Assembly: GCA_002269645.1 (NCBI GenBank)
Contig: NIVC01004109.1
Location: forward strand, 1 to 60,352
Length of the DNA: 60,352 nt
Source: Macrostomum lignano
Taxonomy: Eukaryota
Direction of reading: 5' to 3'
Within the stretch, counting starts at the first letter, position 1, and each line of letters starts with the position of its first letter. The position numbers and the translations under genes were made by a program. Below, in pieces: positions 19,101 to 22,100 of this stretch. Below the pieces are notes generated by a model. The model had not been told where the DNA came from and searched no databases. It saw nothing but the letters and a program-made list of their open reading frames with translations.

Positions 19101-22100
19101 GCTTCTCCAATCGAATTTCAAAAGTCTTTCATTTTAGGCAGTTTAACCGTACTTTTTGTTGAACAGGTAGTTTACCCCATAGACTTCCGGTTGAACAGGT
19201 AGCTTACCCCATAGACTTCCGGTTGAACTGGTAGCTTACCCCATAGACTTCCGGTTGAACTGGTAGCTTACCCCATAGACTTCCGGTTGAACAGGTAGCT
19301 TATCCCATAGACTTCCGGTTGAACTGGTAGCTTACCCCATAGACTTCCGGTTGAACAGGTAGCTTACCCATACTAGAAGCAGTTTACCCACTTTTACCCA
19401 CTCTAGACACCCCAGCTCTGCTAAATCCAGCACAGGATTAAGACACGTACCAAGAGAGATTTTTTCACCGGCATCCGGCGGCAGAACAAAGGTGAGCAGC
19501 GACATTGATGAGATGAGCACGCAAGGAATAATGAGGTTAATGCCATAGTACAGAGTCCGCCTCCGTATCTGAATGAAGTAGCTCAGATCGATGAACGGAT
19601 ATGGGCAGCAGTCGTACTCAGCTGCCGTCCTCTTCCCGTCCATGCCTGCAGGTTGGGAAGTCGGGTTCGGGGGGCGGGTAGGGGCACCGGAACGGGAGCC
19701 GTGAGTTCTCGTATCGTTTTGTATCGCGCATTTCATCAGCATGCAATTAATTGCAGTTTATTTAATAATCTTATTCAACAGGTATTTCAAAGTAACTTCT
19801 AATTAGTCTGGGACGCAGCTCGCGACCTTAAAGTTTCGTTCTAATAAGATTTATTAACGTTAAATTTCTTATCTATAGCCTCGATGACGTAATATAGAAG
19901 TTACTAAAAATAGAAGTTGAAAATCGTACAGCGTCTATCTATTCAATAGTACCAGTACTATATTGGCAGATTGTATACTAAATAATTAATAGCCAAGTTG
20001 GAACGGAGACACAATTAACAGAGTAAAACTGCTAAAAAGATTTTTCTTTGGATAAGAAATCATGAAAGTGCAACTACTGTATGCAATGTATAGCTGGGAT
20101 GTACTTGCAGCTGCTAGATATTGATGGTACTTTGCGCATGCTGGCAGACTACACAGACACGTATTTATACACGATCAGGTTGAGGAAAATTCACTTGAAA
20201 GACACTACAACAAACTATTTAGACTGAGGAAAGTTGAAGTTCTCAGACTGACGCCACCCTGATCATCCATTCGCAATTCTTAGAAATTGAGGCCCTACCA
20301 AAGCTAACTTTCTCCCCAGCATCCGGCGGAATGATGAAGCTAAGCAGGGTCAAACAGGCCATGAAAATGCACGGCCCAATTAGATTGAATAAATAGTACA
20401 GCCTGCGCCTGCGGACTCGAATGCTGTACTGCAGGTCAATGAACGGGTGCGGGCAGCAGTCGTATGTGGCGCTGTTGCGAACTCCAGGCATGCCTGTGGA
20501 AAGTATTCGACACTTTGTTGTCTGCTTCTGCTGGCTGAGGCAGCTGCGCTTTTGATGCTGGCTTCTGACACAGCTGCTTCTGACACAGCTGCTTCTGACA
20601 CAGCTGCTTTTGACGCAGCTGCTTCTGACACAGCTGCTTCTGACACAGCTGCTTCTGACACAGCTGCTTCTGACACAGCTGCTTCTGACACAGGCTTTTG
20701 GGACAGGCTTCTGACACAGGCTTTTGGGACAGGCTTCTGACACAGGCATTTGGGATAGCTGCTTCTGACACAGGCTTTTGACATAGCTGCTTCTGACACA
20801 GGCATTTGGGATAGCTGCTTCTGACACAGGCTTTTGACATAGCTGCTTCTGACACAGGCTTTTGGAACAGCTGCTTCTGACACAGGCTTTTGACATAGCT
20901 GCTTCTGACACAGGCTTTTGACATAGCTGCTTCTGACACAGGCTTTTGACATAGCTGCTTCTGACACAGGCTTTTGGAACAGCTGCTTCTGACACAGGCT
21001 TTTGACATAGCTGCTTCTGACACAGCACAGGCTTTTGGGACAGGTTTCTGACAAAGGTTTTTGACCTAGAAACAGCCTCGATTTTCTTACTTGAGTAGAC
21101 CCCAGTGAGTAACTATGAGTAATAATAGTGGCAAAATCAAGTGCAATTTGCCAGAGGTTAATTAGTAACAGAGAAAAAACTGTGTAAAAAACGACAATTA
21201 TGTTAGAGAAAAGTACAGTACAAGCTTCAATTCGGGACTATGTGTCTGACGTTAATCATTTGCCAAATATACTCTTGTAGTACGAGCTTAAAAGTACAAA
21301 ATGCATGGTAACACCGTTTTTTATCATGGTGCACTTTAAGCGACGTTGTCAAACAACCGGTGAGAAGCATTACTGCCCATTCCGCCGACTCCCCTGAGCA
21401 GGCACACAAGCGCGCGGCAGTCATACTCCCGGGCACACACTCACACAGGAGTGCACAGCGGCCCTAACTTTATTTATCGTTAGGCTGTACACTTCACTGT
21501 GTCTTGGGGGTTGGCACTCAGGGGCGTTAATTACCCGAGAAGAGCCAAGCCGAGATTCCAATTTAGCCCAAAATTAATGTGACTGCACTTGGAATCGAGC
21601 CTGGGCCGCTGGCGCATCAGAGCGCCGCACCTGATCACTGGGCTGCGGCGTTTCAAGTTTCGTGTGTTTAGGCTATGAGATGACACTGTCAGCAATGTGA
21701 TTTTTTGAAAAGATTAGCCATGCATTATCGCTTGGTTGACTTGCCTTCCAGATACCACTCCCCGCTGGGCACATAGGTCTCCAGATCTGCTCCGCCAATC
21801 TCTGAGCAGTTATTGGGGTCGTTTAGTCGCATTTCGTTGGTGCTTAGCGACTCATTTGAGCACTTGAGCCTCAGGTCCAGGGTGCCGCCATCGTAGGACC
21901 ACGACCCGAATTTGAGCTTGCACACCTGGGTGTCGAATGGGAACCAGGTGGTGTCAATCTTGCAGGTGGATCTGAACATTCCTGGCGGGATGAAGTTCAT
22001 GTTGCCCGTGTGCTCGATCACCACGTTTGTCGGGTACGTGCCGTCAAACTTCTCGTCGGCGCTGCGTTCGGAACGAATGCGAGGTGTTGGATTGTGTTGG

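Follow-up and report, generated by a model that had tools for sequence, protein, structure and literature searches.

A tandem pair of loop C/M1 exons in an alpha7-like nicotinic receptor gene of the flatworm Macrostomum lignano, ancient, conserved and probably spliced as mutually exclusive alternatives

The 60,352-nucleotide contig NIVC01004109.1 of the Macrostomum lignano assembly GCA_002269645.1, the whole of which was analysed and is called the window below, carries an alpha7-like nicotinic acetylcholine receptor (nAChR) gene on its minus strand (38115-16171). We found that the exon encoding loop C, beta10, the first membrane segment (M1) and the M1-M2 loop is present in this gene as two tandem copies, 7a and 7b, and we conclude that these are probably an ancient tandem duplicate whose members are spliced in a mutually exclusive manner. 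The observation of the exon pair is confirmed, and there is good support for an ancient, conserved pair of alternatives; strict exclusivity, a functional effect of the choice and the use of 7a in M. lignano are what we infer.

The exons were located by tblastn with an approximate alpha7 sequence that was used purely as a probe (Table 1). When one exon of each pair was taken, the gene gave an intact open reading frame (ORF) of 563 amino acids (aa) with the Cys-loop, the YDCC and GEK motifs and four membrane segments, in which the Cys-x13-Cys loop is encoded by exon 5 and the vicinal Cys (YDCC) by both 7a and 7b. Two predicted proteins of the same assembly, P0104 (BOX15_Mlig026469g1) and P0108 (Mlig020283g3), are 97% identical to the assembled protein and differ only at the exon 8 choice, and two further loci, L002 and L003, carry copies of the window gene that are ~99% identical to it and have its complete exon set. 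In full-length M. lignano proteins, the domains Neur_chan_LBD (PF02931) and Neur_chan_memb (PF02932) are both present. The closest named relatives of the assembled protein were of the alpha7, alpha5-6-7 or ACR-16 type, and insect alpha5, alpha6 and alpha7 scored alike against it (46-49% identity). By these sequence features, the window gene encodes a Cys-loop receptor, namely a nicotinic alpha subunit of the alpha7-like group. Two separate genes or a pseudogene fragment were ruled out as the source of the second copy, since the constitutive exons each occur once and the copies are flanked by introns whose splice sites are regular.

The preliminary description had placed the pair at 19451-20493, and these coordinates proved exact: on the minus strand, 20493 is the first base of 7a and 19451 the last base of 7b. 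The two exons have like boundaries (cag/GC acceptor, G/gta donor, phase 1 at start and end; the 7a donor is G/gtaggg, the slash marking the exon boundary). They are the same at 121/195 bases (62%) and at 38/64 whole codons, or 40/66 when the two split Gly codons are counted, which matches the earlier count of 39 of 65 identical residues, and their alignment has zero gaps and zero stops. Exon 7a spans the loop C flank, YDCC, beta10, the pre-M1 RRRR, a divergent M1 and the M1-M2 loop to position 3' of the second membrane segment (M2; EKVSF), and 7b encodes the corresponding stretch, in which M1 is alpha7-like and the end reads EKISL. The motifs listed at first as kept (YDCC, PFIDL, RRR, PC and PPDAGEK) are all present in both copies, and the differences listed (PGVRNSAT vs DGKRTAAE, CCPHP vs CCPYP, and M1) are seen in the translations as described. 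Common to both are the first loop C Tyr, the vicinal Cys, the pre-M1 arginines, the M1 Pro-Cys and the -1' Glu; PPDAGEK aligns to DSGEK of alpha7, which contains the cation-selective GEK motif with the -1' Glu before M2. Compared with 7b, 7a has an extra basic residue after the pre-M1 RRR, no M1 Gly, a re-packed M1 and Phe for Leu at M2 3'. The resemblance of the copies is not due to chance, because both match Pfam Neur_chan_memb (PF02932), both align gap-free with human alpha7 from the loop C flank to M2 3', and the flanking exons (1, 2, 4, 5, 9 and 10) are single-copy in the window gene. A tandem-duplicated loop C and M1 exon within a single alpha-type nAChR gene, as originally described, is supported. 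Both copies also have Phe at the second loop C Tyr site (Y194 in alpha7 chain numbering; CCPHPF / CCPYPF), and so do most M. lignano paralogues, while other spiralian copies mostly have Tyr.

The differences between 7a and 7b are distributed over codon positions 1, 2 and 3 as 22, 14 and 38, different codons are used at 17 of the 38 identical residues, and the Nei-Gojobori method (NG86) gave 0.36 nonsynonymous (dN) and 2.3 synonymous (dS) substitutions per site, the latter saturated. From the third-position bias and the saturated dS we conclude that the pair is old and has evolved mostly under constraint; taken alone, the 7a-7b comparison would be compatible with a recent death of one copy. Among the paralogues, P0106 and P0113 hold a 7a-like copy followed by a 7b-like copy, and in P0112 a 7a-like copy runs directly into an 8b-like exon. 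A distance tree of exon 7 placed the a-type exons of the window gene, P0106, P0112 and P0113 in one clade with 95% bootstrap, and the four M. lignano b-type copies in another with 69% bootstrap. Since the a-type clade extends over the window gene and its paralogues, the duplication is older than the M. lignano gene family. Exon 7a of the window is 70% identical to the a-copies of P0112 and P0113, a value inside the span found for constitutive exons (57-94%). L002 and L003 differ from the window at 0 positions in 7a, at 1 synonymous position of 195 nucleotides (nt) in 7b and at ~1% in the intron, a divergence too small for a selection test.

Outside the flatworms, a HMMER search with 7a found many proteins with two matched stretches. 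The nemertean Lineus longissimus has an alpha7-like gene with five RefSeq isoforms, all of 480 aa (XP_064652926, 652936, 652944, 652952 and 652968), of which X1, X2 and X4 have the canonical copy of exon 7 and X3 and X6 the divergent copy (RRRKLYF). The exon boundaries at its locus (L006) match those of the window gene one-to-one, and there the canonical copy follows the divergent one downstream at a distance of ~0.8 kb. ENA contig L004 has an ordered a/b pair just 72 nt apart, and in the annelids Capitella and Owenia the pair is found in predicted proteins in a-then-b order. Eight tandem pairs (three M. lignano genes, Lineus, Capitella, Owenia and two ENA contigs) were typed by position alone. 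The upstream copy has no M1 Gly at exon position 34 (G211 in alpha7 chain numbering) in 8/8 pairs, F, C or M instead of L at position 64 (M2 3') in 8/8, and K, R or Q instead of T at position 30 (after the pre-M1 RRR) in 7/8. Because boundaries, a-upstream order and diagnostic residues are common to the tandem pairs, they appear to come from a single ancient spiralian duplication that predates the split of flatworms, nemerteans and annelids. The earlier suggestion that both copies are under selection is borne out along three independent lines, namely the third-position bias, the 7a clade over four M. lignano genes, and the ordered pair in Nemertea and Annelida with the either-or Lineus isoforms of equal length. 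Arthropod alpha7-like genes with a tandem exon 7 pair were also found (termites, locust, stick insects, bugs, barnacle, isopod and lobster); their types are conserved across orders (polyneopteran and hemipteran insects, crustaceans) and are without the spiralian a-type signature, and this arthropod pair may be independent of the spiralian one. The upstream arthropod copy is alpha5/alpha7-like.

Exons 7a and 7b have the genomic features expected of exclusive exons, being adjacent, homologous, equal in length and phase, each with its own AG and GT sites and an open frame, and both conserved across paralogues and species. We presume that exon 5 would be spliced from its GC donor to one member of the 7a/7b pair and that the chosen exon would join 8a or 8b, so that equal-length subunits with two alternative M1 helices would result; 7b is the canonical, slowly evolving form and 7a the divergent one. 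The exon 5 donor is of the GC-AG type (GAAG/gcaagt, 21739-21744, minus strand) and is the sole donor serving the 7a and 7b acceptors. The Mlig_3_7 annotation was derived from RNA-seq and a de novo transcriptome, with isoforms <75% of the major one dropped (PMC5730564). The transcript-derived models of the window gene (P0104, P0108) use 3b, 7b and 8a, and 7b is supported as the major isoform.

What weighs against an ancient, mutually exclusive pair concerns the expression of 7a, the age of the pair and the means by which exclusion would be enforced. Protein searches with 7b or with an e5-7a-8b-e9 junction query found no M. lignano fragments, and an exact DNA scan of metagenome contigs found no 7a-8a or 7a-8b junction; no M. 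lignano transcript, EST or spliced contig with 7a came out of these searches. Moreover, the nearest paralogue, P0105 (L001, NIVC01004712.1, gene 10001-15919; 73% protein identity, dS 0.94, dN 0.078), has one exon 3 (b-type), one exon 7 (b-type) and one exon 8 (a-type); it has evidently lost 3a, 7a and 8b secondarily, and its exon set looks like subfunctionalisation after gene duplication. The loss of 7a there means that the a-form is dispensable in at least one gene copy. Exon 7a of the window gene could accordingly be an unused relic, formerly alternative, with only 7b used now and 7a not yet decayed, and this explanation would suit the sister paralogue already without 7a, the faster evolution of a-type than of b-type exons and a transcript-based annotation that holds only 7b-containing models. 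We consider it unlikely, since the frame, length and AG/GT sites of 7a are intact despite a dS of ~1 to the nearest paralogue, since 7a is identical in two other assembly copies against ~1% difference in the adjoining intron (a comparison of low power), and since an annotation that dropped the less abundant isoforms is uninformative when it is silent on 7a.

As for the age of the pair, the a-type exons are fast-evolving, with 7a of the window identical to a-types of other phyla at only 32-36/64 residues, and the cross-phylum a-clade is weak (47% bootstrap only). Pairs that arose independently in each phylum, with upstream copies diverging in parallel, would fit this value, the about equal distance of the window 7a from the a- and b-types of other phyla, and the arthropod pair that occupies the same exon without the spiralian signature; our argument from age and selection would then be overstated. 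Such independent origins are quite unlikely in our view, because the boundaries and the a-upstream order are the same in all eight pairs from three phyla and the residues at positions 34, 64 and 30 recur in nearly all of them, and even so the pair would be older than the four M. lignano paralogues.

As for the means of exclusion, both introns are GT-AG introns, steric exclusion is ruled out because the 7a-7b intron is 653 nt long, and nonsense-mediated decay cannot enforce exclusivity because 195 nt equal 3 x 65, so that transcripts with both copies or with neither stay in frame; the one candidate for an enforcing mechanism, a long-range RNA pairing (below), is not significant on its own. In addition, the Lineus isoforms are predictions of the automated RefSeq annotation. 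One copy serving as a cassette exon, or joint inclusion of 7a and 7b, is very unlikely even with a length that keeps 7a+7b in frame and many predicted proteins that hold both copies, because an extra membrane pass would be expected from pentameric channel topology to invert M2-M4, because the concatenated M. lignano models look like products of ab initio prediction, and because the Lineus isoforms are strictly either-or. Models with concatenated copies were found in M. lignano (P0102, P0103, P0106, P0109, P0113), Capitella (P0125), Owenia (P0127), Cryptotermes (P0115, P0126), Zootermopsis (P0116), Schistocerca (P0144), Rhodnius (P0129), Nilaparvata (P0132), Amphibalanus (P0137, P0342) and Armadillidium (P0346). 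In many of the predicted proteins the two copies lie exactly 65 residues apart, and the models of M. lignano also fuse 8a and 8b and include truncated or intronic pieces; the subunits so modelled have membrane segments in duplicate. The concatenated 7a+7b (and 8a+8b) models are probably prediction artefacts, and as such a systematic annotation error in flatworm, annelid, insect and crustacean database proteins.

Besides exon 7, the window gene has paired exons 3a/3b and 8a/8b with matching phases, as in the alternative set of insect alpha6. The 3a/3b pair corresponds in position and size to insect alpha6 exon 3 and has equivalents in Lineus, Tubulanus, spider and lobster isoforms. Exons 8a and 8b differ at the pore-facing positions 13', 16' and 20' (M/V, L/M and D/E, respectively); 8a resembles an odonate/locust alternative (SVFSLLVAD..PQTS), and the Lineus and L004 genes have the 8b type only. 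Within the gene only one inverted repeat stands out: a candidate RNA pairing of 31 nt (81% complementary, -40 kcal/mol, minus strand) between 20242-20272, 37 nt past 7a, and 18336-18366, 77 nt before 8b. Its arms are reciprocal best partners in the pre-mRNA, the L002 and L003 copies are identical there, and the duplex would loop out 7b and 8a. With a blastn E of 0.62 the pairing is not significant alone, and one of the arms (arm A) can pair almost equally well with a site in exon 5. Because the transcript-derived isoform is 3b-7b-8a, P0105 has fixed the same set and P0112 joins a 7a-type to an 8b-type exon, we tentatively raise the hypothesis that the exon choices might be linked as two modules, 3a-7a-8b and 3b-7b-8a, with the candidate RNA duplex as the link between exons 7 and 8. 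We hold this to be doubtful, as the duplex is statistically insecure and the single exon 8 of other spiralians serves both 7a and 7b; if true, M1 and M2 helices that are adapted to each other would be chosen together, through coordinated mutually exclusive splicing within a single channel gene.

The preliminary description had laid its emphasis on loop C, and this emphasis was not upheld. Across the eight tandem pairs, no loop C position separates the a- and b-types between species, and the type-diagnostic positions (30, 34, 42, 44, 47 and 64, partly 54 and 62) are confined to pre-M1, M1 and the M1-M2 loop. We therefore rejected the loop C differences as the conserved point of the switch; those of the loop C flank (PGVRNSAT vs DGKRTAAE, and H vs Y after CCP) are, on the sequences compared, lineage-specific. 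In alpha7, the M1 residue S222 influences allosteric modulators of the transmembrane site (PMC5767682). The equivalent residue is Ser in 7b and Ala in 7a, adjoining an Ile-to-Met change. Both forms are predicted to be acetylcholine-gated cation-channel subunits, because each retains the pore Glu (-1'), GEK, the vicinal Cys and the first loop C Tyr. Because the type-defining residues lie outside loop C, the switch more likely concerns gating or modulation than agonist binding, and the a/b choice likely tunes coupling, gating, desensitisation, modulator or lipid sensitivity, or assembly more than agonist recognition. The a and b forms would then be a naturally occurring, conserved pair of variants in gating or at an allosteric site, open to direct comparison by electrophysiology, and M. 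lignano is tractable to transgenesis, which makes isoform-specific reporters and knock-outs feasible.

Table 1. Exons of the M. lignano nAChR gene and the intron between 7a and 7b, in positions of the window
Feature	Position	Strand	Remarks
exon 1	38115-38061	minus	nAChR gene
exon 2	28150-27984	minus	nAChR gene
exon 3a	25588-25632	minus	45 nt; loop D region
exon 3b	24186-24230	minus	45 nt; alternative to 3a
exon 4	23122-23013	minus	one copy in window gene
exon 5	21745-22061	minus	loops E/B/F and Cys-loop; constitutive
exon 7a	20299-20493	minus	upstream a-type copy, 195 nt, phase 1/1
intron 7a-7b	19646-20298	minus	653 nt; carries one arm (20242-20272) of the candidate RNA pairing
exon 7b	19451-19645	minus	downstream canonical b-type copy, 195 nt, phase 1/1
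exon 8a	18795-18881	minus	87 nt; M2 4' to M2-M3 loop
exon 8b	18181-18267	minus	87 nt; alternative M2
exon 9	17032-16923	minus	nAChR gene
exon 10	16776-16171	minus	nAChR gene

Downstream of the receptor gene lies a gene for Rpb2 (RNA polymerase II) at 826-4342 (minus strand), as in L002; the spacing between the two genes is ~7 kb greater in the window than in L002, with an AT-rich stretch between them at roughly 6-12 kb. Upstream of the receptor gene, a retrotransposon ORF of 1435 codons, which has domains for reverse transcriptase and RNase H, occupies 43036-47343 on the plus strand. The introns at 16000-30500 carry a long minisatellite or microsatellite in nearly each one, with period 39 at 17568-17973, period 32 at 19158-19369, period 28 at 20561-21025, period 10 at 22084-22919 and period 8 at 26776-27948. 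A (GGC)n run at 16406-16445 encodes poly-Gly in the M3-M4 loop, and its length varies among the assembly copies. The Lineus locus L006 has an extra alternative exon 4 pair (77550-77666 and 77712-77819, 45 nt apart), of which isoform X4 uses the upstream copy.

In insects, alternative splicing of exon 3 (loop D) and exon 8 (M2) in nicotinic receptors of the alpha6/alpha7 type shapes pharmacology and insecticide resistance. The window gene and insect alpha6 belong to the same receptor group and have in common a 45-nt exon 3 pair, an M2 exon pair and tandem copies of equal length and phase. The insect nAChR alpha6 gene has the mutually exclusive exons 3a/3b and 8a/8b/8c (PMC1919356, PMC6393475), and unlike these the exon 7 pair extends from loop C through pre-M1 and M1 to the M1-M2 loop, is found in a flatworm and is accompanied by a short M2 exon (87 nt). 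Exclusive exons of other Cys-loop receptors are exon 4/4' of Dalpha4, exons 3 and 6 of RDL, exon 3 of GluCl and exon 7 of Bombyx alpha8 (PMC2045683, PMC2064938, PMC13512814). Like the window pair, they are tandem exon duplicates that yield subunit variants, but their sites are in the ligand-binding domain, near loops D, E and F or the Cys-loop, or else in transmembrane segments TM2-TM3, and none swaps M1 together with loop C. The 'exon 7' alternatives of Bombyx alpha8 were rejected as a precedent, because they lie in TM2-TM3, a different segment. Our literature search found no described alternative loop C/M1 exon in any nAChR and no paper on how nAChR genes are spliced in M. lignano.

Among solved structures, the best relatives are those of human alpha7 (8c9x, 7koo, 7eki and others; E ~1e-52), against which the exon is gap-free; YxCC, RRR, the M1 Pro-Cys and GEK are conserved with human alpha7, and the window copies differ from it by Phe at Y194. 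The vertebrate CHRNA7 matches have one copy of the exon 7 segment, whereas the window gene has two. The nearest counterpart is the Lineus gene, which has the same exon structure, a upstream of b and the a-signature (RRRK, no M1 Gly, EKVSFG), and which differs by a single M2 exon and the alternative exon 4 pair; it consists of automated models with no published description, and these isoforms already encode the a/b swap. Tandem exclusive exons are known from this receptor family and the loop C/M1 site appears to be new; the pair would add to the alpha6/alpha7-type splicing a third switch site, at which the whole segment from loop C to M1 is replaced.

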